Shown: positions 3,280 to 29,981 of the stretch, one piece after another
How the letters are laid out: every line of letters begins with the position of its first letter
Position numbering within the stretch: position 1 is the first letter of the stretch
Assembly: GCA_030704615.1 (NCBI GenBank)
Contig: CM060733.1
Coordinates: 27,776,001-27,840,000, forward strand
From: Takakia lepidozioides
Lineage: Eukaryota > Plantae > Bryophyta
Direction of reading: 5' to 3'
DNA length: 64,000 nucleotides
Program-made: the position numbers and the translations under genes
Notes under the pieces: model-generated
Database searches by the model: none
What the model was told of the DNA's origin: nothing
Seen by the model: only the letters and a program-made list of their open reading frames with translations

Positions 3280-5016
3280 TCAAAAGCTCTTTCCAGCTGA
3301 TCTCTCCTTTGCAAGAAGCGATGCTTACTACTCCAGTTTGCCCGGTTTGTTGTGGATGCGTCACTCCCATTCCCTGAACTGAAGAGCTTAGCGTTTCCAT
3401 GGTGATGTCCAGGGGGCCTTGGCAGCTAGCCTGGTGGGTGTTGAGTAAAATGAGAACTGATTCCTGAAGATGCTTGAGCGAACTTCTATACTTGAGAGTA
3501 CCAAGGCGGCCAAGCTCACGTCTGGACATGGAAACAGAGATGCAAGGCCACAAACGATTAAGGCAGGGTTGAATCCAAAACATTTGAACGGTAAGGAAAT
3601 AGTAGACGACTAAGAAGCCGTAGTCAGGAAATTTATAGGAGAAGGGGAAAAGTTGCTCAATATACTACATTCTCAGAAGGTTGAAGTAGACTATGCACGT
3701 CTTGACCACCGTTGGACAAGTGATGCACCTGAAATCTCATGGGTAACAGTGGCTGGAAAGATGCTGCGCCCCGCCCTCTCTCGTAGTGTTCACTTTTTCA
3801 GCTATCCTCCACAGAAGATGTTGACTATTAGCCCCGCAACTCTATATCTTGATCAACAGGTTTCTTGTCGCTGTACACTCAATGACCTCCTAAGCTCAAT
3901 CTCAAGACTAGCTGGGTAGTGACGAGGACCCAAATCGTTCCTGTAGCTCCAGATTATCTCTCAAAAGACCATGTTCCCATATGCAAATTGCTTGGATGCT
4001 GGATCACGACTTCTAGATATGATTTTTGACAGTCGGGGTTGTACCCAAACTATGTGTAAAACAGAAGAGAATTGGCTGTGCACGAGAAACACCTTCTGGT
4101 GATTCGCGAGGGAAGTAGAGGTTAGATAGATGATTCTTCAATACTTTTCCAGCAACTAGTCACAGCGCGTCCGTTGCCCCATGCCCCTCAGGAATTACTC
4201 CGTCAAATAGAAAAGGAACACCGGAGGAGACTAGCCCTCTTTTTCCTCTCCCGTTCATCCGCACAACCGCAGCAGCAGTCTCGGACCTGTGCAGCTCTTA
4301 TAGTACACATACAGATAAAGATAAGATAAAGTTTCTTTAACGTCCAGTGAATTTACAGAGCCTACACGCCATGCAGAGAGCAACCTACACGCCATTCTCC
4401 CAAGTGACATATTCCATTACGTGGTAGACTTTTGGAATTACGTGGCGTACAATTCAAGGTAAGTAAGGGTAGGTAAGCAAACCTTCATTTACCGGACACA
4501 CCTATGCATTCGTCTGTGCTTACAAGACAACTGTCCAGCTTTTGGTCCGTCATGTACTGGACCTGAATGTCGGCGACAAGGGGATTGTCGGCAAGAAGGG
4601 GATTTTCACGTGGCCAAAAGCATGGCGGCAGTATATGCTGTACGCGTTGTAAGGTTGTCAGTCATCATCTTATACTAATTTTATCAAAGAGCATCTACGC
4701 ATGCACCACTATCGCGGCACTTGAACTGGAGATGGTTGGTTCATCTGTTTCTAATAGCTGCAAATTCCGTTTACAAGAGATGCATATGAACCTTCGAGGC
4801 TATTAGAAACAGATGATGAGGACCATACTGCAGTGCACAAGGCAAGGCCGAGGCTTCGCCTGAAGCCTAATTTTCCATCCAAGAGTCTGGATTACAAGTA
4901 CATGCAACTTGATAACAATGCGGTGGAGTTAGTGGCCTTGCAAGGCTAGCAAATTTGAAGAGGCATCTCCAAGCACGGCGTGGTTTAGGCTTGAAAACGG
5001 AAAGTGTGATGAGGTG

Positions 5017-7268
5017 ATGCGGCTTTTGGAGGGTGAAGCTAGGTTGCTACGACAAACAGGTTCTAAGAACCGTACTGCATTACACATGGCAGTCATCGAA
5101 TGCTGCGCAGAGCTAGTGACGCAAGTGATACAACTGGTTCGTACACCACCGTCCAATAATGCGGGTGATTTGTCTCTCGGGGATCTACTTGAAGCAGTCG
5201 ATGGTTCATGTGGTCAGACAGCGCTGGTGATCGCAATAGTCATTGGAAATACAAAAATCGTCAACACCCTGAACAATGCCGCCCGGAGTTCACCCGAACC
5301 CAATGAAGATAGCGACTTAGAACGTAGGCAGCAACTACGGGAATTAATTGTGCAGGAGCTACAAGAGGAAAAGTTCCAGGCTCACACAGAATTGTTGAAC
5401 CGTTTAAGATCCCCAACCGACGAAAATACTGGGGAAGAGTATGTCTTTCATCGCGCATGTGCCTTTGATGCGATTGAGTCTAAAAAAATTAGCGAAATAT
5501 TGCAGAAAATATTACAGAGTATAGTTGACAGGGCAAAGGAGAGAGAGCCAGAACTAGTACACTTTATTTACGAACTGAAAGATCGCCGAGGCATGACTCC
5601 GTTGCACGCTGCAGTTGCCAGTGAGATAGAAAGCAACCTGACTCTTCTTCTCGGGATAATTCCTAACGAAGATCGGTACAACAATTGTGTGAATGCCCTT
5701 GATGGCGCAGGACGAACACCGTTGCATCGAGCTGCTGCACAGTCTGGAGACGAGTCCAACATTGGTCCGATGCTCGTGGCTGATGGAAGGACAAATTTGA
5801 ACGCAGTCTTTTCTCCGTCTGCAGATAAGGAGGATTATCCAGCAGATTACAAAAGGGCTCATCGCAGCCCCAGAACGGCCCTGCACTTGGCTGTGGTCCA
5901 CAACAAGCTCAAATGTGTGGAAGCTCTTCTCGGAGCCGACAGTTCTCGAATAGACTTGAACCGCACGTCTGCTCGATTTGTAAAGTTTCATGAAAGTGGC
6001 CCCGACCAGATCATGTACTGGACACCTCTGCAGATTGCTGCATTCATGGGACACCTGTCCGTGCTCCAAATGCTGGTCCAGGTAACTAGTCTATCAAACC
6101 TTCCTTTTTTGTCTCCCTTCTTAAGTGTACGCATTTCACATAAGCTATTCACAAATGTCAGTAGTTTCTGATTCTCTTTTGAGCCCTATACATACTAGTA
6201 AGATAGTGGGCACAATGATAGAGCCACATTCAATCAAAAATAAAAAATAAAATAAAAAAAGATTTGCATCTGACCTCGCTATGTACTTTTTGTCAGAATG
6301 ACAAAGCTTACGATCACGGACGATATCGCAACAAATCGAGGTCCCCTACAATTTGGGACCAAAGTAGCGCGTTGCACATTGTTGTATGGACTGGAAATGC
6401 AGAGGCTCTAAGGTTGATCGTGGAGAGCAGACAATTTGATCCATTCGTTACAGATGTGACATTTGGGAAAACCGCCCTACATTGGGGAATAGATGAACGG
6501 GTGTGTTATCACGGCAAAGTACAACATTATGGAGATTTTGTTGACTATGAGAGTTTACAACTCACATGTGAAAGAAGTTCTTTAAGAAGACGATTGACAG
6601 ATTTCAGTGGGAAGGGATGCTTAATCTTATTGCTACAAACTGCTGATATCGACCTATGGCCCAAAGATAACCAAGGACATGTTCCTTATCCTGGTCCTTT
6701 GGCATCTCAAGAAGTATGCACATGGTGGTATGAATATGTAGCTACCCTCATTCGGGCCACAAAGAAAAACCTCACTATTGCAGCAAACGCCATCACAATT
6801 ACAGCAGCATTAGTTGCAACTGCGTCTTTTCTGGGACCACTACAACCTCCTCTTGGCATTGAGAGCAATGCATCACTATATTATGAAGTTCTTGCAGTGA
6901 GAATCTTTATTGTAAGTGATAGCTTGTCATTTTATTTGGCGGTGGCATCCATCATGTTGTCTATCATCCCATCACTTCCTTTGCCACAAGAGCCGCTGCA
7001 AAGGGAGTTGCGACGACACCGGATTACGATAATTGTGGCGGTATGTTTACTCTTAGTATCTATTGTATGTGTTCTAGTTGCTTTTGCGGCCGCCACCATT
7101 GCAATATTGCCGGCGTGGAGTCCTAGAATGTTGACATTGAGCACAACCATTATTGGTGGAGCCGTTTGTGTGTTGGTTATGATGGCGTTCTTGTTTAGGT
7201 TGTTGAGATTTATGCTCCATAGATGTGAGTTTGTTAAAGACCTATACTACGAGTATGCCCAAGTTTAG
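5017..7268 (+). CDS. Ankyrin-repeat + PGG/transmembrane (ACD6-like) protein, copy 1
   Basis: Exons 5017-6081 and 6297-7268 with a phase-0 GT-AG intron. Multiple TALH/TPLH ankyrin repeats, then AALVATASFLGPLQPPLG and ~4-5 hydrophobic helices. The upstream ATG used by copy 2 reads 'caaggct' here. Confidence 0.9.
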
Positions 7269-7289
7269 TGACATTTGATCAATCAAAGT

Positions 7290-8412
7290 AACACCACCCG
7301 GACCATCCGGTGACCATCATCCCAGGGCTTGTCAAATTCTCCCCAACCACATAATCACATCTCCTCTTTGTAACCCTAGATTGTGTTATCCCATGTAAAC
7401 CCCAGAAGTGGAACCCTTTGACCCTAAAACCGTGTCACCCCTAAATTGGCACCCCATGCAACCCCGGATCATGTAACCCCTAAAGCATAATCCTGAACCA
7501 TGTAACCTCATTGTGTGATCCTACGTAACTTTATATGGTGACATCCGGAGTTCATATCACCTTATGTAACCCCGGATCTATAACCACATCTCGTGCCACA
7601 CCCTCTCTCACCCTAGATTGTGTCATTCCACTTCAAATCCATATTTATGATGTGGACCAAAATGATCACCTTATGTTCAAATTTCAATGGAATTCACCAA
7701 TAGTACATATGAGAGCTTGAGTCCGTTGTAATTTCATTCATTGTGGTAACAGTCCACGATGATGGTGTGCAAAAGTCAGTAGCAGAGTCATTTTTTATCA
7801 GACTAATAATTAGAGAGTTATTGTGGGTGCGTATTAAAGTTAAGAATTCAATGACATATACATTTGTTGGTTTCAGTGAGTAAATTCAAAAATATGGATG
7901 ACACCATCAATTGCAGTCATTTAAATTTGGTTGACACCATATAGGGCTCATAGGGTAATACGAATTGAGGTTACACGATGGAGGTTATATGGGTCAGGGT
8001 TACACTTGAGGGGTTACATGATCCTGGATTATAGTGGGTGACACAGTCTTAGGGTTACAAAGGGTCACATGACATGGGGTTATACGATCGATGTTCTAGA
8101 GGGTGATACAATTTTAAGGTTACAAAATTTTAAGGTGACATGACATGGGATTACATTACATAGGGTGACACGAGACTTGGGATGACACGATTTTGGGTAA
8201 CATAAGGTGACACAAGATGTGGTTATGCGGTTTGGGTTACACGGAACTTGGGGACGGATGTCACCATAGGACCTAGCCAATGAGATGAGAGTGGGGGTGG
8301 GGAGAATTTGACCGAGCCATGCTTGCTGCTGCGAATTAATGTCTGCCTGAGGCAGAAAACCGGGCAGTCCGGGGCATTCGGCCCAAGCAGCTCGCATTAA
8401 GTTCTTACCTTA
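7290..8412. mobile_element. Old non-autonomous relative of the large MULE (copy A)
   Basis: 8290-8412 resembles the MULE right TIR (gggggtggggag..tgaccgagcc; atgtctgcc; gcattaagttcttac), and 7325-7350 is its inverse. TGTAACCC motifs lie on the left half and GGGTTACA on the right half. Confidence 0.75.
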
Positions 8413-8432
8413 TCAATATATAAAGCAAGGTA

Positions 8433-8755
8433 CCGTACTTACCTAGTTTATTAGGCACTTCCGCACCTAATGATTAATAAAAATAGAATATTATTAGGCA
8501 GATTCGTTTTTATTATTTAGGCACCTCACCTAGGTAATTTCCAAACATTAGGCATGTACACTGGATAACAATGAACAATTGTTTTTTACCTCTCTCAAAA
8601 ACTATTGTTGATGTAATTCTCACAATTTTCACAATTTTCGAGCAATTAGGCACTTATCAGGAAAATTTTCCAAGTTTTAGGCACATTTTCCAAAAAAGTT
8701 CTAAACTTAATTAGGCACTTGATTTTGAATTAATTATTGCCTAATAAGCTAGGTA
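8433..8755. mobile_element. Tc1/mariner-type MITE (copy A; right TIR tip deleted)
   Basis: TA|ccgtacttacctagtttattaggca ... tgcctaataagctaggta. The intact paralog is at 33255-33583. Confidence 0.75.
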
Positions 8756-9299
8756 TAGTTTGTTGGTTTTGTTTGTTTTGTAGCGTTGAGATCTCCCACC
8801 CGCGGGCTGTAGCCCCGGTGCTTGGTACGGTTGGAAAGTCCTTGATGAGGAGGGGTGATGAGGCTTGGTCTCATGATTTTTGGACTCGCGGTGTCGAATT
8901 TCAAGTACTTTTGATCGTTGGAAATTCACGAAAAATAACAAAGTGGGCTTTCGTGGGACAATGATTGGAGCCTCGACAAAGATATATCAATAATGATTGG
9001 ATATATTACTACTCAATAAATTCATGGAAAAAAAGAAATTGGGCCCTGACATGGGAGACGTACTTGGATAGGAAGATAATAGGAATAATGTAAGAACTTA
9101 ATGCAAGCGCGTCAGGACGGTCCAGCCCTGACACCCGTACCGCCGGTTCTTCGCCTCCGGCAGACATCGAAAGGCAGCCGCTGGGCTCGGTCAATCCCTC
9201 CCCACCCCGCCCTCATCCCATCGGCGTCGTCGCCCAGGCGCGTCGTCGCCCCCTGCGTCGTCGTTCTGCGACACCAGTCCGCCGCTTCCAGCAGTCCGC

Positions 9300-11945
9300 C
9301 AGTTCCCTGTAACCCCCGCCCCGGGTTCAACCATCACCCCCATGTAACCCTCTGTAACTCCGCCGAGTGTAACCCACATTACCATGTAACCCTCTGTAAC
9401 CCATATAACCCCATGACCCTCTGTAACCCTCACCACCATGTAACCCTCTGTAATCCATGTAACCCTCTAAACACCGCAGAGGTCACCCCCACCCCTATGT
9501 AACCCTCACTACATGTAACCCTCTGTAACCCATGTAGTCCTCTATAACACCGCAGAGTGTCACCCCCACCCCTATGTAACCCTCACTACATGTAACCCTC
9601 TGTAACACTTTGCAACCCATGTAACCCCTGTAACCCTCTGTAACCCGCAGAGTGTCGCCCTCACCCTTATGTAACCCTCACTCCATGTAACCCTCTGTAA
9701 CCCATGTAACCCTCTGTGACCCTTTGTAACCCTCACCACCATGTAACCCTCTGTAACACCGCAGAGTGTCACCCTCACCCGTATGTAACCCTCATTCCAT
9801 GTAACCCTCTCTGACCCTCTGTAACCCTCACCACCATGTAACCCTCACTCCATGTAACCCTCTGTGACCCTCTATATCCCTCACCAGGTGTAACCCTTAC
9901 CTCCATGTAACCCTCTGTAACACCGCAGGGTGTCACCCTCGCCACCATGTAACCCTCACTCCATGTAACCCTCACAACCCTCTATGGCTCTGTAACCTAT
10001 GTAACCCTCTGTAACACCGTAGAGTGTCGTCCTCACCCCTTATGTAACACTCTGTAACCCATGTAACCCTCTGTGACCCTTTGTAACCCTCACCACCATG
10101 TAACCCTCTGTAACACCGCAGAGTGTCACCCTCACCCGTATGTAACCCTCATTCCATGTAACCCTCTCTGACCCTCTGTAACCCTCACCACCATGTAACC
10201 CTCACTCCATGTAACCCTCTGTGACCCTCTATATCCCTCACCAGGTGTAACCCTTACCTCCATGTAACCCTCTGTAACACCGCAGGGTGTCACCCTCGCC
10301 ACCATGTAACCCTCACTCCATGTAACCCTCACAAACCCTCTTGGCTCTGTAACCTATGTAACCCTCTGTAACACCGTAGAGTGTCGTCCTCACCCCTTAT
10401 GTAACCTCTGTAACCCATGTAACCCTCTGTGACCCTTTGTAACCCTCACCACCATGTAACCCTCTGTAACACCGCAGAGTGTCACCCTCACCCGTATGTA
10501 ACCCTCATTCCATGTAACCCTCTCTGACCCTCTGTAACCCTCACCACCATGTAACCCTCACTCCATGTAACCCTCTGTGACCCTCTATATCCCTCACCAG
10601 GTGTAACCCTCTGTAACACCGCAGAGTGTCACCCTCGCCACCATGTAACCCTCCGTAACCCTCACAAACCCTTTGTGACACCGCAGAGTGTCGCCCTCAC
10701 CCTTATGTAACCCTCACTCCATGTAACCCTCTGTAACCCATGTAACCCTCTGTGACCCTTTGTAACCCTCACCCACCATGTAACCCTCTATAACACCGCA
10801 GAGTGTCACCCTCACCCCTATGTAACCATTTATGACCCTCTGTAACCCATCTAACCCTCTGTGACCCTCTATATCCCTCACCAGGTGTAACCCTTACCAC
10901 CATGTAACCCTCTGTAACACCGCAAAGTGTCACCCTCGCCACCATGTAACCCTCCGTAACCCACACAAACCCTCTGTGACACCGCAGAGTGTCACCCTCA
11001 TGCCCATGTAACCCTCACTCCATGTAACCCTCTGTAACCCTCCGTGGCTCTGTAACCCATGTAACCCTCTGTAATACCGTAGAGTGTCACCCTCACCCCT
11101 TATGTAACCCTCTGTAACCCATTTAAACCTTTGTGACCCTTTGTAACCCTCACCACCATGTAACCCTGTGTAACACCGCAAAGTGTCACCCTCACCCCTA
11201 TTTAACCCTCATTCCATGTAACCCTCTCTGACCCTTTGTAACCCTCACCACCATGTAACCATATGTAACCCATGTAACCCTTTGTGACCCTCTATATCCC
11301 TCACCAGGTGTAACCCTTACCACCATGTAACCCTATGTAATACCGCAGAGTGTCACCCTCGCCACCATATAATCCTCCGTAACCCTCACAAACCCTTTGT
11401 GACACCGCAGAGTGTCGCCCTCACCCCTTATGTAACCCTCACTCCATGTAACCCTCTGTAACCCATGTAACCTTTGTAACCCTCACCACCATGTAACCCT
11501 CTGTAACACCGCAGAGTGTCACCCTCACCCGTATGTAACCCTCATTCCATGTAACCCTCTCTGACCCTCTGTAACCCTCACTCCATGTAACCCTCTGTGA
11601 CCCTCTATATCCCTCACCAGGTGTAACCCTTACCTCCATGTAACCCTCTGTAACACCGCAGAGTGTCACCCTCGCCACCATGTAACCCTCACTCCATGTA
11701 ACCCTCACAAACCCTCTGTGGCTCTGTAACCTATGTAACCCTCTGTAACACCGTAGAGTGTCGTCCTCACCCCTTATGTAACCCTCTGTAACCCATGTAA
11801 CCCTCTGTGACCCTTTGTAACCCTCACCACCATGTAACCCTCTGTAACACCGCAGAGTGTCACCCTCACCCGTATGTAACCCTCACTCCATGTAACCCTC
11901 TCTGACCCTCTGTAACCCTCACCACCATGTAACCCTCAGTAACAC
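9300..11945 (+). repeat. Left subterminal TGTAACCC minisatellite array with ~357-bp higher-order units
   Basis: Dense catgtaaccc/ctgtaaccct units about 10 bp apart. Identical spurious ORFs at 9775 and 10132 give the 357-bp period. Confidence 0.95.
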
Positions 11946-12289
11946 CGCCTCGTGTACATCATACACGTGTAAACTATCCGACGGCCGAATGGAGGTTTAA
12001 ATAGAGGCCGAAACCCTAATTTGCTCTCTCCATCCGTTTCCAGATTCTTAGCTCGCTCGTTTTTTTGCTTTGGGGCATCAGCTTTCTGCAATTCCCATGG
12101 TGCCCAATCGGCTTCACACATCAATGCGAAAGATTTGTAGTTCATTCAGTTCAGTATCGTCATCCCAGCAACATACAAGACAACGCTTTCCGCGCACGAT
12201 CCGTCAAATTTATTACCACGGTTTTCTCTACGATTGATACGGTTGTCTCTATTCTTTTTCTTTCTCAATGTCATTCTTGTTGTTTTGTC

Positions 12290-12460
12290 ACCGTCCCCGA
12301 TGGCTATGGTATTCCTAAGATCCGCATTAGGAAAGGGTTTTGTTTCTTTCGGTCTAGCCATGCAAGCAGCCGCTCATTTGACGGGGTGCCCATTCACTCT
12401 CCTCTCGTGTATCTTTGTTCACACACCAGCCGGGGCAGCCTACTCATCGCTATTATGGAT
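12290..12460 (-). pseudogene. Decayed inverted paralog of the cargo-gene zinc-finger exon
   Basis: The minus strand reads ..CPGWC/..RRVNGHPVK*AAACMARPKETKPFPNADLR, versus ..CPYCG..SRLNRHIVDGTAACMARPKGTKPFPDAELK at ~13430-13560. Confidence 0.8.
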
Positions 12461-13257
12461 GCAATACGTATCGAATCATGCGTGTTTTGCAAGCACTGTC
12501 AACCGGTTACATGTCTGATGGTTTATATGACTACCTCACGTGTGGTATGGTTACACACAGGGGGTTACACGGTGTTTTCTTTCTCAATACATGCTAGCTT
12601 GGTAGACGGTTTAGTAATGGAGGTTTAGATGGGTTGACATGTTTGATGGGTTACGTGGATGTTGCGCTCGCGGAGCCACATAGGCTAGGGTTACATGGGT
12701 GGGGCATTACATTGACCATGTTTACCTGGAGGTTGCATACTAATGGTTTGATATGACAGGGTTACATCGATGTTGTGTTCGGGAGTCACATAGACTAGGG
12801 GTACATGAGGTTGTGACGAAGGGTTACATCATATCTGGGTACCTGACGGAGGGTTACACTCGACGTGCCTGGCATTCGAGTAACGGCCGGTTTGTCGCGC
12901 TCACAAGTGTAGGGTTACGGGTTACACTCCGCTATTCCGGGTGACACCGGGATTGCAACTCATACACGTGTGAGTCAGTGCGGATATAATTGATTGCAAG
13001 CCGCCAGATTTTAATGAACCGCCGTCTTTCGCTTAACCGACGTGCCTTACGGGTGACATCTAGCTAGCTTCGTTCTTCGTTCTTTGATCATTGTTCAGTT
13101 TTCCCCTTCTCGCAGCCTTTCATATTCTTCCTGCACTCCTTGCTGTGCGTGCTCCCTGTTGTGCGTTCTTCGGAATTCTCTTGGTCTTGGTCTTTTCTTG
13201 TCTTGTCTTTTCTTGCTCTTGCTCTTCTCTTCTCTTCTGTCAGCTTTTTCTTTTGTC

Positions 13258-16200
13258 ATGGCTGATTGTTATTTGTTCCCTGGAGAGGCTACTATTCCAT
13301 TTGATCACTTGAAAAGGGATGGCGAACGAGTTCGCTTTTGGTACACTGAGCATGAGCATGCTACAATGATCGCGTACTGCCACACCAGGTGTAGAGAGGC
13401 CAAGGTGGAGGGAGCAAAGGGCCGGCCTAAGTTCAAATGTCCTTATTGTGGGGCAGTAAAGGTAGATAAGAGCAGATTGAATCGGCATATTGTCGATGGA
13501 ACGGCCGCATGTATGGCCAGACCGAAAGGAACAAAACCGTTTCCTGATGCGGAGCTCAAGCATGCCATGGCTGTTGAAAATGTGATGAATTCTGTTCCAG
13601 CTTCTTCTGTTGATGCATATCATGCATGGATTCTGCAAAATAGGGTGGCTTTGGGTGAGATTGCAGATCCTATTGAAGTGCCTGCTGTTGTACCTTCTTC
13701 GGCTATTTCTGCTACAGAGGTTCCATCTTCTAGTGCTCCTGCTGTTTCTGTCCCTGGTCCTTCTATTCGGCAGGTTTCTAACGAGAGAGACAAGCGGCGA
13801 TTGAGCCCGCCTCTACCTGTCCCTATTGCAAAGAAAATCAACATTGGAAACCGGGGAAACCGGAGCTCAAGGTTCATCTTGCGAAAGAGAACTCCAGGCT
13901 CAATCCTTCTGCTACCGCATGGCCTTATTCCTCAGTTCCCATTTGAATGTCAATGAGAAGGGGTTTTGGCCGGCATTCCAAGAATTTGTTGCGCGAGGCG
14001 AGGGCGCAGTCCATGCGACAGCTGCAAAATCAAGTTGGGTTCTATCGACAGACAATCAAGTTGGATTCCCTGCCATTTCTCTGTTTTTCAAATTTTGGGC
14101 TGTTGTCTATCCATGTAACCCCTTGTGTTACCCCCCCTGTCTCTCCTGTGGCGTGTAACCCAGAGTGTAACCCACCTACAGAGGACCCCTTTTAAAAACC
14201 CCTATGGTGTGTAACCCACCTCTGTGTAACCCCGTGTAGCCCATCTTGTTTGTAACCCATTTTCATGTGTAACCCCTCGTGCTGTAACCTTTTTCTCTGG
14301 TGTAACCCCTCACGCTGTATTGCGCAGGGAGCTCGATATCATCTTAGAAGCGATGATATGGACAGTGTTGTTGCTGCCCACAAGGCGTTTACTGCCCAGC
14401 CGGATCATGGTCCGTTAATGATAGAGGAATTGAATCGGGTGAAGGAGTATTTAGAGAGCATTGGGCATCCTGACATGCCAAAGCAGAAAAAGAAAAAAGG
14501 TGGGAGACTTACACGAGTCCATCGAGAGAGCCAAGCCTCACATGATGATGACACGATGGACGAACTAGCTGTTGGCAATACCGACCTTGACGATGCCAGA
14601 ACTTCAAATCCTCTTGTCATCACTATTACTGTAGATGGAATCAAAGGTTTGGTTGTTCCACATCCGTTGGAATTCACTCGTGGTTTTGCCGAAGGATTGA
14701 TCAGTCAAATGGAGAATCTCACCAAACCGCACATTGGACCGCCACCACTCCTTTTGAGAATTCTAGCCCACAACGATGTAAGAAATCATGGCAGGTCAGT
14801 TTCCCAAACGCATCCCAGGTTGGGGTTCACGACTGAACTTCTGGAAAGTGCTCTTACGGCCTCAAAGGTGAAGGACCTGGTCGATGAGTATTACGGCTTT
14901 AGTCTGATGTACTTTGCACAACCTGGTGACGGAATTGCGACCTTGGATTCTGAGCTCGAAGACTTAAGATCGAGTTTGAGTACAGAAGAGTGGGGTGACC
15001 GGTCAATTAAGATCAACGGAGCTATACAGTTTTGCAAGGCAAGCCGTCGTCGCGCCGCCCATCACTTTGCGATCCAACAGAGAGAATCGTTTATCCAGCT
15101 TTGGTGTTGTGGCCTCTTCAGCGAATCACCAACAGAAATGGACTTCAATGCGCGTTTGGGCATCCAGTATATGAGAGACCTTGGGTCTGTAGTGCCTTGG
15201 TATCTCTGTAAGTGTTACTCCATCCACTGTCACCCCTCTCGTCGTGTAACCCCTTTGTGTGTAATCTTGTAATCATTGTAACCCTCGCTATGTGGAACCT
15301 TGTAACTCAGTGTAACCCTCGTTGTGTGTAACCCTGTAATCAGTGTAACCCTCGCTGTGTGTAAATCAGTGTAACCCTCGGAGTATGTAACCCTGTAATC
15401 AGTGTACCCCTAATGGTACCCCTCGCTGTGTTACCCTAGATTTGTTACCCTCTCGTTGTGTAATCTCAGTAGTGTAACCCATGGTAGTGTAACCCATTGC
15501 AAACTACTGTCTCTAACAGGGTGGTGTAACCCATATCGTGTAATCCGAACCACTGTCTTGTCCTAGTCAGTGTAACCCTTACATAGTGTAACCCTTGCAC
15601 TTTCAAAAACCTCGTTCCACGACTAAAAACCTTTGTCTTTTCCCCGATGCAGATGAGTCCGAGCTCATGACCAATCAAGTCGCCAATGCGTTCAAAAACC
15701 TTTTTGAGGCTCAACGTGAGCTTCACGAAGTTGTGTATGGGGCCCCTCCACAATGCGATACAGGGGGCGTAGGGGGCGCGCAGACGAGCGATGGGCCAAT
15801 TTCCGCCCCGCAGAGCGACGATGTACATGACGAGGACATCATTCCAAGTCAATCTGCCGTTGTATCTTTGTCGCAGGTTGGTGAATTGTACTCAACCCAG
15901 CTGCACTTAGGGGTGAACCTAGCAGACTTGACGCGGGATTTGCCCATGATTTCTGATACTGATACTGAAGATGATACATCAAGGTGGAACACCCAAGTGC
16001 GAACCTCTTTGTCCGCAGCCCCAGTCATTTCTTTTGAAGGTCTTAATCGAAGAATCGGGGACCCGCTTGACCCAGAGTCTGTGTATGACTTTGAATCTGG
16101 AGATGCTGGGTTGAACCCTCGATGCAGCAATGTAAGTATTTGTCAGGATCATGTGGTCAACCTCTCTCAGAATGACCCAGCCTTCGTGGGTCCCATTGAT

Positions 16201-18612
16201 GCGCAGGGTGACTCTGCAAGGGGAGGATGCCCTGAAACCGAGGGTTACACTGCACCTGAGGGTGACACTGTGCAGAGAGGAGCAACAGGGAAGGAGGGTT
16301 ACACTGCACCTCAGGGTGACACTGTGCAGAGAGGAGCAACAGGGAAGGAGGGTTACACTGCACCTCAGGGTGACACTGTGCAGAGAGGAGCAACAGGGAA
16401 GGAGGGTTACACTGCACCTCAAGGTGACACTACGGATACCGGTGTGGCTGACAATGTCGTGAGGGACATTGTCGTGGGTGACACACCATTGCCCGTGAAC
16501 ACTGCAACTTCCGTTGAGAGTGACATTGACATGGGTTACACTGATAGGGGTGACACCCCACAGCCAACCCACATGGTAGATGTCAGTGAGTGTAACACTG
16601 TCATGGATGACATTCCACTACCACTAGTCGTGGAAGGTGACACTCCTTTGCCACGGCCACTAGTCGCGACGGATGACGGTCTTCTGCTAGTCAACATGGT
16701 CTTGGAGGGTGCGGAGAAGGGTGGTACAAGGGTGACACACATAAGATTGTTACTCAGCAGAGTGACACTAGGAAGGAACCCGATGAGAAGGGTGACACTG
16801 CGAAGAGTGACACTGATAATGCGGCCAAAGAGAAGGGTGACACTGAGAAGGTAGCCGGAGAGAAGGGCGACACTGAGATGCGTGACTCTGAGGAGGTAGC
16901 TGAAGAGAAGGGTGACACTAAGAAGAGTGACACTGAGGAGGTAGCCGAAGAGAAGGGTGACATTGAGAAGGAAGCCGAAGAGAAGGGTGACACTGAGAAT
17001 CGTGACACTGAGGAGGTAGCCGAAGAGAAGGGTGACACTAAGAAGCGTGACAAGGGGTTTGAACAGAAGGGTTACACTGACAGGGGTAGCACCGAGGAGG
17101 TGAGCTGTGACACTTCTGCCCTTGGTCAATCACCTCCCCAGCACGTCTCAGACGAGGGAGTGCAGTCTTCAGCACTTGCAGCAAACTCAGAACAAGGCAC
17201 CTCTGGCTCAGAAATTCCCCCTACCGGCGGCATTGTCAGGGTTGCAGAGAATCCCAGGAGGTCAAAACGGCCGCCTGCTCAAAGAAAGCGGTTGGCTGAA
17301 CCCCCTAGCGCTGACAAAGAAGTATCTGTTCTTGTCGCACCCAAAAAACAGCGAACCAAACCGAAAGGCAAAAGTGCAGGGGTCTCGGAGGTTGACGTTG
17401 TCCAGCAGCAAGAGGTCCTTGCCAAGCACTTGCGGGAGCGTTCGAGGTACCTCATTGTACTTTGATCCTCTCTGATTTTGAATATTGATTATAACTCTTG
17501 TATGATGCATCGTAATGTTCGTAATGTGCGTTTGTTGTGCAGACTAAAACAACGGTACTTGACAAAGTTCAGAATGGTGTCGGACCCTCCTGGGGCGCCC
17601 GAAGTGAAGTTTTATTATGGCGATGCCTTCCTGGCTTCTAGTCCGTTACAGTTTTACTTGGAAGAGACAGATTTTGAGCCGATGTATAAAATAAGAGCAA
17701 CTGTCACAGATGCATTGCTCTCGGGTTACAACAAACTTCTGGAGGCCAAATTGTTTAAGGCTATCGCACCTGAGTTTGTCATCTGTGCTCCTTTCAATGG
17801 CATGTCATGCGTACCAATGGTAACGATCTGCAGACGCTATTCGGGTTGGTGCAAGAATGGTACACTCAGGATGCCCGAGGGATGGTGTTCACAAAGAATC
17901 GAGATCTTGTGGACGTGGTTGTCATCCCTATTGTCTTCGAGTAAGTAATTTCAGCATTGACTGAGCATGTTGGGTTACACTCCTCTATTCTAGACTGAGT
18001 TGCACTAGTGACTGCTGACTAGTTGTGTAACACCGTTTAGAGTTACAGTACAAAGGGTTACACTACTGGGTTACACCACAGCCGGTTACACCACAATGGG
18101 TTTCATTGGAGATGTTTTTTTCTATTCTGACGTAACGGCTTTGTTTGTGTTGCAGTGATCACTGGAGTGTTGCTGTTTTAGAGCGCCGAGGTCGGATAGT
18201 ACATTTGGACTCCCATAAAACCATTGCCCGACCCAAACTCATTGAAGGAATTTTGCGAAATTTTGCCATAGCGTTCTTTGATTTCATGCCTGGATCTGAT
18301 GACTTCAGTTACGTCATGGAGAGGATGGAATGGTTTGAGGCCAGTGTCCCCCAACAACGGAGCTGTTGGGAGTGCGGCTATTATGCACTTTGTTTTGTGC
18401 AATTTTACTTGGAGTGGAAGTTCAATGTGAAAACCACAGAAGATCGAACCCGTCATAGGCGGGCGTTTACTGCAAGTTGGTTCAACGAGTCAACCATGAT
18501 AGCTTCCCGTACTCATATGATTAGTTGGCTAACGTGGGGTTACACTTATGGGTTACATACCTGGCTATGTCAGGGTCACGTTGCTGAAACAGTATACTTT
18601 CGTGGCATGTAA
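13258..18612 (+). CDS. MULE cargo gene: N-terminal C2H2/BED-like zinc finger, unknown middle domain, acidic repeat linker and C-terminal Ulp1/C48 SUMO-type protease (~1440 aa after repairing 3 single-base frameshifts)
   Basis: Exons 13258-14059, 14328-15207, 15653-17446, 17543-17940, 18156-18612, all GT-AG and phase-consistent. Zinc finger FKCPYC-x12-H-x7-C. Protease motifs VVIPIVFDDHWSVAV..HLDS..PQQRSCWECG (His-Asp-Cys with oxyanion Gln). Frameshifts near 13835, 16679 and 17793. Confidence 0.8.
16240..17080 (+). repeat. Coding tandem repeats: 54-nt unit (EGYTAPQGDTVQRGATGK x~3.5) and EEVAEEKGDT-type units
   Basis: Units start at 16240, 16294, 16348 and 16402, and are built from ggttacact/ggtgacact. 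Confidence 0.9.
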
Positions 18613-19661
18613 CCCCACCTCGACTATGCGCATTTGTTTTATTTTTTATTTTTTTCGCACTGAAGTGTTTGTGCACTGAAGTTCTCAGATTTATACTACA
18701 TGGGGTTACATACATGAGGGCTATGTACAATGGGTTACATACGATGGGGTCACAATAGTGTGGGGGTAACATCTGGTCGGGCTACATACTTCTTGGAGTT
18801 ACAACACTCTGGGTTACACTCACTCAAGAGGGTTACACAGTTCTAAGTTACACTGTGCACAATGAAAGTGGGCAGGGTTGCCTATACAAGGGCTACGTGT
18901 CGTGGGGATACATAAGATGGGGTGATGTAGCATCGGGGTTTATAGCGTGCACCCCAAATTGTACAATGGGTTACATGCGATGGGGTGACATCAATGGGGG
19001 TTACATGTGGTCGGGATACATACTTCTTGGGGTTACACAACAACAAGTTACACTCCGGAGGGCTACACTGGTCCATAACATAGGTTGAACGGAATGATTA
19101 TCTATCTCATGGATTACACGTCCATGGGTTACACACAAATTGGGTTACACATAGAGGGGTTACACATACAGGGGCTAGTGTTGGTGACTAAAGGTGCTCG
19201 ACTTCAACATCTTCCCACTCTGTATTGAAGGGTCATGTAACCCCGGCAGACTAACCCAGACCCTGTAGTCACATTGTAGTCACATTGTTCTCAGAGTTAC
19301 ACCACTGACAGCAATATTCTATGGGGTTACATACTGGGTTACACTGTTGATAGTTACATTGCAGTTACACTTGGAGTTACACCACAATGAGTTACACTGA
19401 AGAGGTTCACACTCATCTGTGTTACACTGTGTGGAGTACCACAGATGCAAGTTACACTAAGTAGAGCTATGTTACGTTATGAAACCCCAGACAGTGTAAC
19501 CCTGCGGTGTGTCACCCCGGCCCATGGGTGTCCCATTGAGTGGGTTACATAGGTTGAATGTGGATGGAATGGCAAAGTGAATAACAACCCATGAACAGAC
19601 ATGTACTTCATATTAAACTTGGTGATCACAAAGTAAGTGTCATTGCCAATGGACTCAATGG

Positions 19662-22600
19662 TCACTTACTACGGAACCGGTCTACAAAATCTACTTTCCT
19701 GGCAAGGGACATGTTGTTTCCATCATCATTTTTTATGAATGGAACTGCTTGAAGAGGGTGCAACAGACCTTTGTCGATTCTAACTTGTAAAGTGGACAGC
19801 CTCCCACGAACACAACGAAGCTCGGCAAGCAAATGTTTGCGCATTGTTTCACTCTCATTGCCAAGAAGCGACAGGGACTTCATCTCAGATTCAATTGATG
19901 AAACATCCGATGGCTCCTGCCGACCACGCCGGGATGATGCTGAGCACTCCGTAGGCTCTGCTAGATTCACAACTTCCTCCTCTGCATCAATATCTGGAAG
20001 TTCCGATTTCATCAACATGTGAAGACCTCCATGAATGGTCCCGAGCTTTGTGCCACAGAGCTTCACAATAAGCCCTTCCTTCAGATTTGGCTTCATCAAT
20101 TGAAGAACGCGGATTTGATGTTTGCACAAGTTACCCTTCAAAGCCCATGGACAATCGCAACAAGCCCAGGTGGTCGCAGGTGCATAGATTGTGTAGCTTC
20201 GACCGGCCGTTTGAACACTATCCACAATCGCCGGATGACCAGGAACAGTGGGCAAATGAACATTGACATCAGGGATCTCCCTTGCAGTCCAAACAGCATT
20301 ACTGATAAATTCCTCCTGTCGTACATTCCTTTTGAAGCCTTTCGATTTCAAGTTATCTCTATACCAATAGTGGGTTAGAACAGGACCCACGAGTTCGCTG
20401 ATCAGCCAATCGATTCTCCTGCCATCAAGCCTTTGCTTTCCCGAGCGTAAACGAGCCTTCAAATTTCCGTGCCAAGATTCAATTGCGGCATTAGTATCCT
20501 GACTTGCGTGGGGAATATAACGAGCCCCCGTGATCCACATGCTCAGTTTTGGGACCCATTCCATTCTGATGTAACGTAGGAAGTCACGCGCAAGCGGATA
20601 GGAATAATTCAAATCTTCCAGTCGCTCCAGCGCCCACTCTTCTGGGGTGACTCCCACACAGGCGTTAATGCCGTACATTACGTCGCCAAGCTGTTTCAAA
20701 ACAGCATTGCGAGTGTATGGATCGGGCATCTTACGCCACGAATGTTTCAGCCAAGCGCGGCGAACATGCCAAAGGCATAGAAATATTGCTACGTCCCCAA
20801 ACGATTCCCTGCACGCACACACATCAAATGCCACCCAATCCATCAGTGTAACTCTTGTCAGTGTAACTCTTATCAGAGGAACTCTTCGCAGTGTAACTCG
20901 TAGAAGTGTAACTCTTCAAAGTGTCACTCTTAGTAGTGTGACTCATGTAACCCCTCGTGCATCTGGTCATGTAACTATCAGTGAAACTCACAGCAGTGTA
21001 ACCCAACACATATAACCCCTCGCAGCGCTGTAACGCAATCCATGTTACACCGTGTAACTCTCAGAGCGACCCAACCCATACAACCCTCTGCGATGCTCCC
21101 AGTGTAACTCACATGCTATAGCAGTGCAACCTAATCCATGTAGGACTGCGGATGACACGCCGTGTAACTCCCAGTGTAACTCGCAGTGTAACCCTCTGTC
21201 TACCTCATAGCAGTGTAACCCTCGGTCTAACTCACAGTAGTGTAACCCTCGGTCTAACTCACAGCAGTGTAACCCTCCGTCCAACTCAAGGCAGTATAAC
21301 CATCTGTCTAACTGATAGTGTAACCCTCAGTGTAATAGACAGCACTGCAACCCAATCCATGTAACCCCTCGAGCAACTGACAGTGTAACTCCAAGTGTTA
21401 CAGGCAGCAATGCACCCCCTCGTGTAACTGGCAGTTTAACTCTTACTGTGATTCTCAGTGTAACTAGCAGCAGTGTAGCCCGATCCATGAAACCCCTCGT
21501 GCATGCAACTTGTAGTGTGACTCAGAACATTGTAACTTCTAGCCGTGTACCTGATAGCATTGATTTCTGCGTCTGCATCGTCGACAACAAAAGCATTTGG
21601 CCTCCAATCTGGTTTGCTCTGAAGAAGTCGGTCGCGAAGACGTTTCATCCAGGGGCTCAAGTCAGTCGTTTTGTTTCTCGCTGATATAATATAAGCAACA
21701 GGTATGCCGTTGAGCCATTCGTCGAACACCATCATGGTATACATTGGGAACTGCAATGTCGCAATGGTACAAAAATGAATAAGGTGAGCGTTATAATATT
21801 GGCAACAGTTGCATGGCACTCACATTTCAGAATGCAATGAAAGGTAAAGCGTGACACGAATACCTTATTTTCGTTGGTCCCAAATGTTGCATCGCAGGAT
21901 ACCACACGGTTGTGTCCCAGGTCGATCATTTTCTGTTTTTGCCACTCCGTTTGTATTCCAATTACGAACTTCAAATCACCCGCCACTGGCGCTGTCTCTT
22001 CATGGTAGAAGAAGACGCTTTCAGGATTGCTATCGACCCACATACGTACACTTTGTGCATCATCTGGATGTTTTTTGTAACTCTCAATCGCAAGCTTGTG
22101 GCAATGTTTCTCACGTCGTACTCGAACAAGAAACAATCGCGACTCCACTCCATGCCTGGCTGAGATGCACAAGCTTCCTGGAGTTGTTGAGTGTGTTGTG
22201 TCATAATCATAGCTGGAGATAGGCCACTGCGAAGACTATCGACGATCCACTGTTTCATATCTTGGTTGAGACGAGGGGCATGCACGAATCGCGAGAAATG
22301 GGAAGAGGGGTCAGCTGAACCATGACATGGCTTTCCTTTTGCATCCACATGCTTTCTGGAAGTATGTGATGATTGCCAACTCTGAATCTAGAAAACACTG
22401 GCCAACTTTGAAGCTACACGTACACCCACGTTTGTATGACTCTCCGAAATCCGCTGCCTTACGTCTGATTCGCTTGACTGCTGTTTGATTATCGGAGGCT
22501 GCTATCGGTTTTTTTTCTTCTTCAATCGGCGGGTCCGTGCGTCTATCTATCGGGCCGTAGCAGCAGTGGTACCTGCAAAAAAAGCATATAAAGCGAGGAG

Positions 22601-23056
22601 GGTTATCGCCATATACGACTTTGCTAGACTAGCAGAAAGAAGTGGGGCTGGGAATGTTATACAACCCTCATAAGTGACTTATTTATGCCACTGACGATAA
22701 CTGTTCGCACGCGGTGTTGTCAAATCTGGCAACTCACGGTACCTTCGATCTTGAACATAAAATTGGGTCTTCCCATCCACTCTACTCCTTTCTCCCTCCA
22801 GAAAGTCAGGAATGCGAGACCATGGAACGACAGCTACTTCGATGGATATCCGTTTCCCTTTTCCCTGGGAAACCTGGCGTATCCAACGGAGGTTTGTGTG
22901 ATTGAAAAGCCCGTCTATGGGCAGCTGTAGGATGCATTTCAAATGAGATACCAAATGCTGCAAATGACAGAGTTCTCCCGCCTCATCTTTCAAACCATTT
23001 GATTCCAATGCTGCTTTGCGTTCCTCGTCTAGCACCTTCGCGGCAGCACATGCCAT
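19662..23056 (-). CDS. MuDR/MULE DDE transposase with N-terminal WRKY-GCM1-like domain and C-terminal SWIM zinc finger (~810 aa repaired)
   Basis: Exons ~23056-22683, 22572-21864, 21750-21551, 20808-19662. Motifs YHCCYG..KRGCTCSF..H..CHG, SCDATFGTN (D), VVDDADAE (D), CLWH, TNAAIESWH (E), CDCPWALKGNLCKH (SWIM). Frameshifts near 22354 and 22100; the first donor reads ATAAGT. Confidence 0.92.
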
Positions 23057-23269
23057 TAGCAGCAACAGTACCACTAGTACAGTACAAATCGCATAACACA
23101 CGCAGCGGAGCCCTCGGGACTGCACGTCGTCTACGCACCTGGTGAAAATGACGAGCGATGATGGAGTTACACGTGGGTTTTGATGTCACCGAATCGTGTA
23201 ACCCAGGTTTGAATTCAAAATATCTGACACCTCTTGGAGCCCGCCAATTTTTGCCGGGCACTAAGGGGC

Positions 23270-25012
23270 TACACGAACAGGGGTGACATGCGTTGGGGAT
23301 AAAGGATCCGGGGTGACACGAGCTATGAGTGACACAATCGGGGGTTACACGGGGGGGATTGATACAGTATCGGGGTTACATGGTGGGGTTACAATGTGAG
23401 AGTTGCACAATGAGGGTTACATGAGGCGGAGCTAAAGCGCTGACGTGCAGAGGGTTACAGGGATATTGGGTTACGAGGAACTGGAGTTACACGGAGAGGG
23501 GTATATGGGATAACATGATACAAGCTTACATTGGGGTTCACGATGCAGGATAACATGGAGTGAGGGTTACACCTCGCGGAGTAACAGAGGGTTACATGGG
23601 TTACAAAGGGTTACAGAGGGTCATGGGGTTACATGGGTTACAGAGGGTGACATAGGGTTACATGGGAGGGTTACATGGAGTGAGGGTTACACTCAGCGGT
23701 GTTACAGAGGGATAAACGGGTTACGGAGGGTTACACCTGGTGAGGGTTACAGAGAGTCACAGAGGGTCACATAGGGTTACATGGAGTGAGGTTACACAGG
23801 GATGAGGGTGACACTCTACTGTGTTACTGAGGGTTACTGAGGGTTACATGGTGGTGAAGGTTACACCTGGTGAGGGTTATAGAGGGTCACAGATGGTTAC
23901 ATGGGTTATAAAGGGTCAGAGAGGGTTACATGGAGTGAGGGTTACATGGGGTTACATGGGTTACACAGGGTCACAGAGGGTTACACGAGTTACGCATGGT
24001 CACAGAGGATTACATGGGTTACAAGGAGTGAGGGATGCATAGGGATGGGGGTGACACTCTGCGGTGTTACAGAGGGTTACATGGTGGTAAGGGTTACACC
24101 TAGTGAGGGATATAGAGGGTCACAGATGGTTACATGGGTTATAGAGAGTTACAGAGGGTCAGAGAGGGTTACATGGAGTGAGGATTACATAGGGGTGAGG
24201 GTGACACTCTGCGGTGTTACAGAGGGTTACAAAGGGTCACAGAGGGTTACATGGGTTACAGAGGGTTACATAAGGGGTGAGGACGACACTCTACGGTGTT
24301 ACAGAGGGTTACATAGGTTACAGAGCCACAGAGGGTTTGTGAGGGTTACATGGAGTGAGGGTTACATGGTGGCGAGGGTGACACTCTGCGGTGTTACAGA
24401 GGGTTACATGGAGGTAAGGGTTACACCTGGTGAGGGATATAGAGGGTCACAGAGGGTTACATGGAGTGAGGGTTACATGGTGGTGAGGGTTACAGAGGGT
24501 CAGAGAGGGTTACATGGAATGAGGGTTACATACGGGTGAGGGTGACACTCTGCGGTGTTACAGAGGGTTACATGGTGGTGAGGGTTACAAAGGGTCACAG
24601 AGGATTACATGGGTTACAGAGGGTTACATGGAGTGAGGGTTACATAAGGGGTGAGGGCGACACTCTGCGGTGTTACAGAGGGTTACAGAGGGTTACATGG
24701 GTTGCAAAGTGTTACAGAGGGTTACATGTAGTGAGGGTTACATAGGGGTGGGGGTGACACTCTGCGGTGTTATAGAGGGTTACATGGGTTACAGAGGGTT
24801 ACATGTAGTGAGGGTTACATAGGGGTGGGGGTGACACTCTGCGGTGTTATAGAGGGTTACATGGGTTACAGAGGGTTACATGGTGGTGAGGGTTACAGAG
24901 GGTCATGGGTTATATGGGTTACAGAGGGTTACATGGTAATGTGGGTTACACTCGGCGGAGTTACAGAGGGTTACATGGGGGTGATGGTTGAACCCGGGGC
25001 GGGGGTTACAGG
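23270..25012 (-). repeat. Right subterminal GGGTTACA array, inverted relative to the left array
   Basis: Reverse complement of the left-arm units, with ordered inverted correspondence over roughly the outer 1 kb. Confidence 0.95.
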
Positions 25013-26749
25013 GAACTGGCGGACTGCTGGAAGCGGCGGACTGGTGTCGCAGAACGACGACGCAGGGGGCGACGACGCGCCTGGGGCGACGACGCCGATG
25101 GGATGAGGGCGGGGGTGGGGAGGGATTGACCGAGCCCAGCCGGCTGCCTTTCGATGTCTGCCGGAGGCGAAGAACCGGCGGTACGGGTGTCAGGGATGGA
25201 CTGTCCTGACGCGCTTGCATTAAGTTCTTACATTATTCCTATTATCTTCCACTTGGATACATAGGAGATTGCACGTGGGCTTAGATGACAGTAGACACTT
25301 GGGCCTCTACATGGGAGATGCACTTGATACATGAATAGGAGATTGTACCTGGGCTTAGATGGGCCTCGACATAGGAAATTGCACTTGGTCTTAGATTTCA
25401 ATTCTTCGTACATGGGCTAATGACATCTGCTACACTAGAGGTCACACTTAGGCCTCCACATAGGAGACGTAGGGATGCATAGGAAATCGCACTTGGTCTT
25501 AAATTTCAATTCTTCACACATGGGCCAAAGGCACAAGCTACCCTAGAGGTCGCGCTTGGGCCTCCACATTGGACTTGGACTTAGATGACATTGGACACTT
25601 GGGCCAACGGCACAAGCTACCCAATATGATAAAACTGGATGTAGTGGACTTCACTCAGGGAATTGAGAACACTACACCGGTTTCTTTCTGGCATGTCTTG
25701 CCAACCTTCTCCCGAGAGTGACATGGAGCTGAAGGGCCAGTCGGGGTGACACCTGGATACATGGGAGGGAGTGTAAACTCCACTTGGGTTTACCTAAACT
25801 GGGTTACACGGTGGGGAGTGTAACTCCACTCAGGGTTACATGGAAGGAAGTGTAACTCCCCACCGTGTAACTCACACTTGGCCTGAAAATCCCTATTGGT
25901 CACTCCAATCCTCTCCTTTTTTGGACCTTTAAAACTTCCCCCAACCGATGTTGAGTACTCTCATTGATATACTTGGTCTATTATTCACATTTCTATTCAT
26001 TTGAAGATGATGCAGGTTCCAAGTTTACTATTTTTTGCAGAGCCCACCAAAGTAAGGTGGAGGCATGGTTACAATGTAGCCCTGAGCCATGACCAGGAAT
26101 ACCTTCGACACTGGGTAGATGCCACGCTGGCAGCCCAACGGTCCTTTTATGAACGCGCAGGTTGCCTTGCAACGGCCATGTCGCCCCCGTTCCCGCTCTG
26201 CTCTTCGCACTAGGTGTTGATGATTTTGCGGGAGCATTAAAGTGCGGTGTAGGTGTGGTGCACCACGGGACTTTCTTGTATTTTGTTTGGAAGCTGATTT
26301 GGTTTCTTTCATTCCCCTTTCTCTTCTTCTCTCCAATTTCTGCAGTTTTCCGAGCATTAAATCTGTGGTTCTAAGGTGCATTACGTAAGAAGAATGCGCT
26401 CGGAGATTCCGTTGGAAGGGTTGAAATGTCAGTCGCTCCATCTTCACAAATTCTGTCTTTCAAAGCTTTGCAATGTCAGATATGCTGTCTCTTGTCAGAA
26501 ATAGTAGGAATGATACATTTCAAAGGTTTTTGAGGAATTTTCTCTTTTGCTTTGCCTCTGGACACAGCTGTCTCCCTATCTCTCGTTTTCCGCTGTGGCA
26601 ATCAGACGTCAGTGCTACATCTACTCCTTGGGATCGTCGATGATGTGCAGAGACTGCGATTTTAATCACAACAGTTTTTCTAGTGTTGTGTCTGAATGGT
26701 GTTGGAGTGTCAAGGTTATAGCCCTTGCACGACACTTTGAGAACATAAA

Positions 26750-28464: not shown

Positions 28465-29981
28465 GTCGTAACCTACACGCCATTCTCCTAAGGTGACGAT
28501 TTCGGGGGCCCCATGAGGGGACAACGTGACGTATTCCATTACGTGCTAGACTTTTGGAATTACCTGGCGGATAATTCAAGGTAAGTAAGGGTAGGTAAGC
28601 AAACCTTCATTTACCGGACACACCTATGCATTCGTCTGTGCTACAAGACAACAGTCCAGCTTTTGGTCCGTCATGTACTGGACCTGAAAAGCTGGCGACA
28701 AGGGGATTTTCACGTGGCCAAAAGCATGGCGGCAGTATTATTAGTGAAGCTGTACGCGTTGTAGGTTGTCAGTCATCATCTTATACTAATTTTATCAAAG
28801 AGCATCTACGCATGCACCAAAGCCATACCTGCAAACAAGAGAAGAACCAAAAAAGAAGAGACTGGGTGACAAGTTCGTTCTATCCCCTTCAATGAAAAAA
28901 GAGTAGTCCGAGACGGACTTGAAGAGAACCCAGCACGTCTGGTATCGTGAAGACACCCAGCACGTCTAAGACACCCAGCACGTCTAAGATACCCAGCACC
29001 TCTGGTCGATTGCCGTGATCCGTGATACCTGCACTGAGTGTCCCACATAGTGGACAATACAAGGATGGGATAGTAGGAGGATGGCGTACCTACAGGTTGG
29101 CTTTGCGCGAGGCTTTGCGATGATGAGCAAGTAGGACTCCACAAGTGTTGATCGGGTTTTTGTTTTTCAGGAGCACACAGAATTTTAGAGTATTTGCCAT
29201 TACTGTCGTGCAAAACTACCCCCACATCTTCCGTGTCAGCAGGATAGCCGAAAGAGTGAACTCCACGAGAGAGGGCTGGGCGCTATCTCCTCAAAGTCGC
29301 TCGTACGCAATGGTAGAGAATGCTGGTGAGTTTGTGAGGATGGTATTAGGGAGAGAGAAAAGAGGAGTGCGTGTGTATGGGATGTTGGATACCAGCTTGA
29401 CATCTTGAGAGTTGCTTCTTCTGTTAAAGAGTTCGTGCTTTTTGAGAGATTAAATCCTGGAGGGGCAGATGGCCCCAAACATTTGCTGGGAGTAACGTGC
29501 ATATCTCTCTAGCTAGAGTTACATCATTTTGACATTGGTTTTGGTGTTGTTGGGGTCGACTAAGGATCGGCTTCCTCAATTGCATAGGACAGCCTTATTT
29601 CCTGCGAAGCCTGGAAGTGGAATCTTCGATCTATAGCTGTCCATCAGTGAGGGATGCACTCTGGTTTACAAGTCTGAATAGCTTCGAAAACAGGTATTTC
29701 TTTCTCGATAACAATGTCTGGCAAAGATGTAGATAGTGGGCTTGCAATGGTTGGTTCATCTGTTTCTAATAGCTGCAAATTCCGTTTACAAGAGATGCAT
29801 ATGAACCTTCGAGGCTATTAGAAACAGATGATGAGGACCATACTGCAGTGCACAAGGCAAGGCCGAGGCTTCGCTGAAGCCTAATTTTCCATCCAAGAGT
29901 CTGGATTACAAGTACATGAACTAACGTTTAGAGCACATCCTCCTTTCTTGATAACAATGCGGTGGAGTTAGTGGCCTTGCA

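Follow-up and report, generated by a model that had tools for sequence, protein, structure and literature searches.

A motif-saturated Mutator element of the moss Takakia lepidozioides carries a conserved accessory gene with an optional Ulp1-like protease

We analysed a 64,000-bp stretch of the Takakia lepidozioides genome (assembly GCA_030704615.1, contig CM060733.1, positions 27,776,001–27,840,000; hereafter the window, whose numbering is used for all positions given without a locus name). The insertion at 9071–25250 is a 16,180-bp Mutator-like element (MULE) with long terminal inverted repeats (TIRs); it is filled with the short word TGTAAC(C/T) and encodes, beside its transposase, an accessory gene (the cargo) laid out as a zinc finger, a central helical domain, an acidic linker and an Ulp1-like protease. 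We conclude that the element structure is real and well supported, and that an accessory gene with an optional Ulp1-like protease, together with a private word, is typical of the wider transposase clade. Judging from sequence, the cargo protein may read the word and form an anti-silencing system like that of VANC in VANDAL MULEs, a reading that we place just short of an even chance.

The word TGTAAC(C/T) is massed in arms, introns and spacers

The element holds 277 copies of TGTAAC(C/T), against about 6.5 expected from dinucleotide content; with the arms excluded, 93 copies compare with 3.4 expected. Density reaches 29 per kb in the arms and spacers and 24 per kb in introns, and is 0.7 per kb in non-repeat exons. 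In the host DNA of this window, counted with motif-bearing relics masked, there are 15 copies in 45.8 kb (11.6 expected; 0.33 versus 0.25 per kb), and the DCP1 region has one in 5 kb. The original prediction, which had the word concentrated in a series of named blocks and rare in host genes, is borne out on both counts, but its phrase "nearly every non-coding compartment" needs qualification: three small introns (96–167 bp) are motif-free, and the repeat part of cargo exon 3 also bears the word (6 copies, with 20 of a TGTCAC variant).

Strand polarity is single within every block. The two arms have 477 14-mers in common, whereas the internal blocks share at most six with any other block or with the arms, and their flanks differ. 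On these grounds the motif core was multiplied separately in each compartment, repeatedly and far from the ends, which argues for selection acting on the word. The claim of a VANDAL-like layout with independent motif growth is thus upheld: a short motif is massed in introns, intergenic and terminal non-coding DNA, as in VANDAL elements read by VANC. We infer that an element-encoded protein binds the word along the whole length of the element. Internal sites are not needed for pairing the ends, so a role in chromatin or transcription is likely for them.

The features of the element, and of a deleted relative beside it, are as follows.

7291–8420 (no strand assigned; second copy at 32453–33230): deleted relative, right end homologous to the element TIR
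9062–9070 (+): left target-site duplication ACTTGGATA, 9 bp, present once at the empty paralogous site 33857–33865
9071–11960 (+): left TIR (110-nt core) and 2.6-kb arm array, 113 TGTAACY
12100–12490 (−): decayed inverted copy of the cargo zinc-finger exon, with stops and frameshifts (16/24 identical, E 2e-10)
12491–13257 (no strand assigned): cargo 5′ region, 8 motifs on the minus strand
13258–14059 (+): cargo exon 1, encoding a zinc finger of C2HC type whose CPYC is at residue 61, a linker and the beginning of the central domain; two bases are missing at 13944
14060–14327 (+): cargo intron 1, 9 motifs
14328–15207 (+): cargo exon 2, conserved central helical domain with no solved-fold match (hhalign E 5e-4, 130 columns)
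15208–15652 (+): cargo intron 2, 13 motifs
15653–17446 (+): cargo exon 3, acidic low-complexity linker; repeats at 16221–17110 consist of the motif and a TGTCAC variant of it, and the frame breaks near 16725
17543–17940 (+): cargo exon 4, encoding the N-terminal half of the Ulp1-like domain, with one base missing at 17791
17941–18155 (+): cargo intron 4, 5 motifs
18156–18612 (+): cargo exon 5, core of Peptidase_C48, where the triad is His (HWS), Asp (HLDS) and Cys (WECG); its 3′ boundary is uncertain
18613–19661 (no strand assigned): convergent 3′ intergenic region, 24 motifs
19662–23056 (−): MULE transposase, about 790 amino acids, four exons (23056–22743, 22572–21864, 21750–21551, 20808–19662)
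20809–21550 (−): transposase intron, 21 motifs
23281–25250 (−): right arm array and right TIR, 71 motifs in mirror polarity
25251–25259 (+): right target-site duplication ACTTGGATA, matching the left 9-bp copy

The element is a TIR MULE inserted in one copy of a segmental duplication

The insertion is flanked by 9-bp target-site duplications, and an empty site with a single ACTTGGATA lies at 33857–33865, inside a segmental duplicate in the same window. The 110-nt outer cores of the TIRs are 98% complementary, and the arms align with each other across 1.7 kb at 88%. In the transposase, a SWIM finger was matched, and the nearest database relatives, 42–46% identical, carry the MULE domain PF10551; DDE residues, by the usual assignment for MULE transposases, are also present. 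Exon 2 of the transposase contains two frameshifts in the window copy, at about 22354 and 22100.

In sequencing run X4, the depth of the main contigs is about 700–1100 versus about 27 for diverged contigs, which suggests some 30–40 near-identical copies of the element, provided that 27 is the single-copy depth. A recently amplified autonomous Mutator family is the best explanation of the element.

The segmental duplication (about 95% identity) comprises 4732–9070 and 25251–26329, repeated at 29747–34933, and includes an ankyrin-PGG gene region; only one of its copies has the MULE insertion. The relative at 7291–8420 is gene-less, internally deleted and diverged, with an identical motif in mirror polarity, and it predates the local duplication. 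A small cluster of TGTAAC(C/T) at 25750–25880 and 34330–34470, in the insertion-target DNA beside a 108-bp tandem repeat, is probably another transposon relic. Elsewhere in the window, a 740-bp sequence occurs twice, at 44912–45637 and 52702–53444, with 96% identity.

The cargo gene encodes a finger, a helical domain and an Ulp1-like protease

The cargo gene has five exons with GT-AG ends and encodes 1445 amino acids once three indels (13944, about 16725 and 17791) are corrected. The single protein of about 1440 amino acids that had been proposed is therefore recovered only after correction, since the frame as assembled ends at residue 233. Profile and database searches were made exon by exon, and the exons were joined only to count length and stops; the donor of exon 1 was placed from the equal intron position in two relatives, L002 and L009 (loci are denoted L with a number). 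Contigs with CC after 13944 are present in runs X1, X4 and X6, and contigs with T after 17791 in X1 and X4. Near 16727, contigs of three runs carry a longer in-frame repeat, so that the in-frame form is shown directly at two sites and indirectly at the third. We conclude that the cargo is intact in the majority of the family. The window copy is either mis-assembled or decayed; since it shows several 1–2-base deletions and few substitutions, an error in assembling a high-copy repeat is the likelier of the two.

Other details of the gene may vary among copies. About 264 extra bases at 18530 were found in runs X1 and X4, so other copies may have a different last exon and stop. The decayed inverted finger exon at 12100–12490 suggests that the cargo 5′ end was formerly present in the element in two orientations. 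Run X6 (2018, library type unrecorded) covers only 13054–14115, from exon 1 into intron 1, and 16104–17500, parts of exon 3; this may point to a short finger-only transcript, or the reads could be DNA.

The zinc finger scores 17–18 bits against a Pfam cut-off of 27, and its PDB profile matches are likewise below threshold. Its CxxC..LxxH..C ligands are conserved across the clade, consistent with a putative DNA-binding C2H2/C2HC finger. Peptidase_C48 narrowly passes its cut-off (21.9 versus 20.7 bits), with His, Asp and Cys invariant in eight homologues. Of the predicted fusion of a zinc finger to a catalytically intact protease, the catalytic triad stands, whereas the finger falls short of the profile threshold. 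Against PDB, the protease profile matched the NEDD8 protease SENP8 best (7e-7), then SENP2 (6e-6), and also Ulp1. The profile is as near SENP8 as the SUMO proteases, and specificity for SUMO is putative.

The central domain gave no meaningful Pfam match. For the L002 domain, a structural model with a predicted local distance difference test score (pLDDT) of 89 is all helical with one 60-residue helix; fold searches returned only coiled coils by way of that helix, which dominated the wide search, and window exon 2 aligns only to the stretch after it. Several candidate leads were rejected: a single-sequence AlphaFold model of window exon 2 was discarded (pLDDT 38); a likeness of the C-terminal part of the domain (family of L002:12843–13754) to ribosomal bL20 (E 0.011) had no backing from fold searches; and sequence searches with exons 1 and 2 returned nothing beyond the element itself and repeat artefacts (a fish and a repeat protein). 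The ESM Atlas contained no named relative of the cargo.

Pfam matches to PMD or to VANC-associated domains were found in no cargo exon, nor among the matches listed for 127 central-domain homologues. No structural match to VANC or PMD was found, in a search led by one long helix and with the presence of VANC21 in the structure library unconfirmed. The comparisons thus support a conserved zinc-finger cargo without homology to VANC or PMD, in line with the proposal of a system evolved independently of VANC.

The cargo is conserved across a transposase clade

Relatives' loci were collected through transposase similarity. Cargo homologues are present in L090 of Ceratodon purpureus, L088, L001/L002/L009/L091 and L018/L024/L025/L032/L063. 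With iterative hidden Markov models (HMMs), the order finger, central domain, protease was recovered in L088 and L090 as well as in metagenome loci rich in AT, among them L032 and L063 (these two probably Sphagnum-associated, judging by the sample series); there the cargo lies either convergent with the transposase or upstream of it. Profiles from which the window had been left out still match the window finger (hhalign probability 92.6%, E 5e-7) and also exon 2, where 130 colinear columns, with the near-invariant Pro and Gly of the family among them, align at E 5e-4; the protease of the relatives was linked by iterative HMM. Purifying selection acts on finger and central domain: between L002 and L009, pN is 0.15 in the finger and 0.25 in the central domain versus a pS of 0.84 and 0.63.

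The Ceratodon purpureus locus L090 lies at CM026437.1, where the transposase is annotated as the hypothetical M758_4G088100 and the cargo gene is unannotated. It has 318-nt TIRs and a convergent cargo with finger, central domain and Ulp1-like protease. L001 and L002 are complete and TIR-bounded; they keep finger, central domain and motif and do not have the protease domain, so the protease appears dispensable and is best viewed as an optional effector.

In the transposase tree, built rapidly with IQ-TREE and leaving its base unresolved and the window on a long branch, the subclades with an enriched word form one supported group. A separate sister group bears the protease, with no detectable finger or TGT word, and its members are decayed.

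Some relatives have further coding features. The transposases at L088:1002–3170, L090:10306–12345 and L087:7564–9453 contain a low-complexity insertion of 400–500 amino acids inside the N-terminal zinc-binding region. A small third open reading frame (ORF) lies directly downstream of the transposase (L002:10967–11482, L001:4029–4508, L009:3546–3947, L088:4893–5351, L087:11361–11972, L090:14137–14658); it is conserved within subclades and has no Pfam match, and no counterpart was seen in the window element. Two ORFs downstream of the L087 transposase (12818–14230, +) have no Pfam or PDB match and may belong to another element; a BAH-like reading of them found no support.

Each subclade has its own variant of the word

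The enriched words are GTGTAACC in the window, AGTGTCAC in L088/L090/L010, CATGTTAC in L001/L002/L009, YATGTTTC in L024/L032/L063 and AGTGTTCC in L087. The variants TGTAAC, TGTCAC, TGTTAC and TGTTTC thus follow the subclades, with a 7–8-bp form RTGT-N-W-C. The word prefers non-coding DNA in L001 (p 5e-6) and L009 (1e-8).

We compared these variants with the two candidate readers. L088 and L090 have AGTGTCAC in common; their fingers are 67% identical versus 50–57% for the N-terminal parts of their transposases. The L087 transposase is nearer that of L088 (68–69%), yet its word is AGTGTTC. This contrast weakly favours the finger as motif reader; it is a single case, in a locus that has lost its right part, for which reason L087 also makes a weak finger-less control and was set aside as such.

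Who reads the word?

We favour a model in which the accessory protein would bind the word through its zinc finger and basic flanks, would load in many copies on arms, introns and spacers, and would keep the chromatin of the element open, as in VANC-like anti-silencing. The protease would be an extra, stripping SUMO or NEDD8/RUB from silencing factors close by. More broadly, mosses may have evolved, independently of eudicot VANC, a sequence-specific TIR-Mutator anti-silencing system in which a finger, with a helical domain whose fold has not been described, reads a subfamily-specific, co-diversifying RTGT-N-W-C word and, in most subclades, brings a SUMO/NEDD8 protease to the chromatin of the element; this wider claim is tentative, and we give it somewhat less credence than the cargo's reading of the word as such.

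Several observations weigh against this model. The cargo gene was found in none of the runs registered as RNA. There is one finger, which scores under its Pfam cut-off, and the protease is missing from complete relatives (L001, L002). In L088 and L090 the word is as dense in coding as in non-coding DNA. The joint absence of finger and word from the protease-bearing sister group speaks for the model, but weakly, since those loci are decayed. Finger, transposase and motif co-descend, so that their correlation is one phylogenetic event, and the L087/L088 contrast that might separate them is a single case without the right part of L087. Motif variants follow the subclades, as they would if they covaried with the finger, but the transposase follows them as well. 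The tethered deSUMOylase that the original prediction placed at the core of the system finds no support in that form, given the relatives without a protease and a profile equally near SENP8.

The principal alternative is that the transposase is the reader. The arms would then be Foldback-type arrays of transposase sites, the internal copies would extend binding for transpososome loading or for activation and hypomethylation, and the cargo would bind the transposase, as MURB binds MURA, or have a separate job. The subterminal arms, which mirror each other in polarity, hold two thirds of the motifs, the gene-less deleted relative retains TIR and motif arrays, the motif class is constant within most transposase subclades, and a related word occurs in L087, where no finger gene was detected. 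MULE TIRs often contain short subterminal repeats (PMC5225508), contact between MURA and MURB has been demonstrated (PMC12973397), and the transposase of AtMu1 is by itself able to bind its motif and to hypomethylate and activate cognate copies (bioRxiv 10.64898/2026.08.24.746577). However, AtMu1 binding was at TIRs, whereas here motifs arose independently in four introns, in spacers and in linker-coding DNA, and the motifs of L087 and L088 differ though the N-terminal parts of their transposases are the most alike. We regard a transposase reader as a serious, if doubtful, possibility; were it true, self-activation driven by a transposase would be taken to an extreme in this clade.

Neutral repeat growth, in which slippage and unequal exchange spread a seed word through unconstrained DNA with no reader, would account for the tandem arrays of the arms and some introns and for the strand polarity of every block. 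We consider it unlikely: the flanks of the blocks are unrelated while the core is identical, and related words recur in distant subclades and hosts. It is slightly less likely still that the word recruits a host factor and that the cargo is no sequence reader: GGGTTACA resembles telomere repeats (telo-box) and the arm polarity, with the G-rich strand toward the element ends, fits, but the relatives' TGTCAC, TGTTAC and TGTTTC have no G run, so the conserved core is not telomere-like, and host DNA shows no motif enrichment.

Comparison with known systems

Among known systems, VANDAL elements and VANC come closest. VANC binds short words that are massed as tandem repeats in the introns of VANDALs and in their intergenic and terminal DNA, and that vary from family to family (PMC5735166). 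Likewise, the present MULE has an accessory gene and a subfamily-specific motif massed in introns, intergenic and terminal DNA. It differs in having long TIRs and a moss host, since VANDALs are non-TIR and VANC is dicot-specific, derived from MAIN/PMD (PMC13547354), and in its predicted cargo, where a C2HC finger is joined by a helical domain that matched neither PMD nor another Pfam family nor a solved fold. The element is no VANDAL but may work like one. Sequence-specific anti-silencing by accessory proteins has been described as a dicot invention from MAIN/PMD; a non-homologous moss system, if true, would be convergent evolution and would offer a natural series of finger/motif pairs differing by one or two bases.

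Some VANC genes (KIU, Kaonashi) carry a captured Ulp1 domain, whose role there is undefined, yet still direct hypomethylation, and a review assigns the Ulp1 domain to these VANC-type (KIU) genes and not to VANB, where the original prediction had it (PMC13317346). In melon, rice and grapevine, too, there are MULEs whose accessory gene contains a captured Peptidase_C48 of the Ulp1 type (PMC13317346), and among active TIR elements of plants this domain recurs as an accessory (PMC12973397). The moss cargo has a captured C48 too, here fused behind a finger and central domain and lost in one subclade.

The Foldback-type MULE Muta1 of Aedes and AtMu1 have TIRs with short subterminal repeat arrays and 8–9-bp target-site duplications (PMC5225508), and in AtMu1 the transposase is a sequence-specific regulator (bioRxiv 10.64898/2026.08.24.746577). 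Here, in contrast, the arrays measure 2–3 kb, the word is also in internal introns and spacers, and there is a large accessory gene.

No description of the moss clade and its cargo was found in the literature searched, which left out most subscription papers. Within that clade, Ceratodon purpureus L090 shares the transposase clade, a cargo with finger, central domain and Ulp1-like protease, and a motif of its own; it differs in that motif (AGTGTCAC, about 3–4 per kb in coding and non-coding DNA alike) and in having no kilobase arm arrays. Because C. purpureus is a laboratory moss and its genome is public, the identity of the reader, the function of the captured protease and any influence on methylation are directly testable there. 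A fusion of reader and protease is not itself new, VANC-Ulp1 fusions being known in eudicot VANDALs. What is new here is a cargo conserved across a transposase clade, under purifying selection and with its own motif variant in each subclade.

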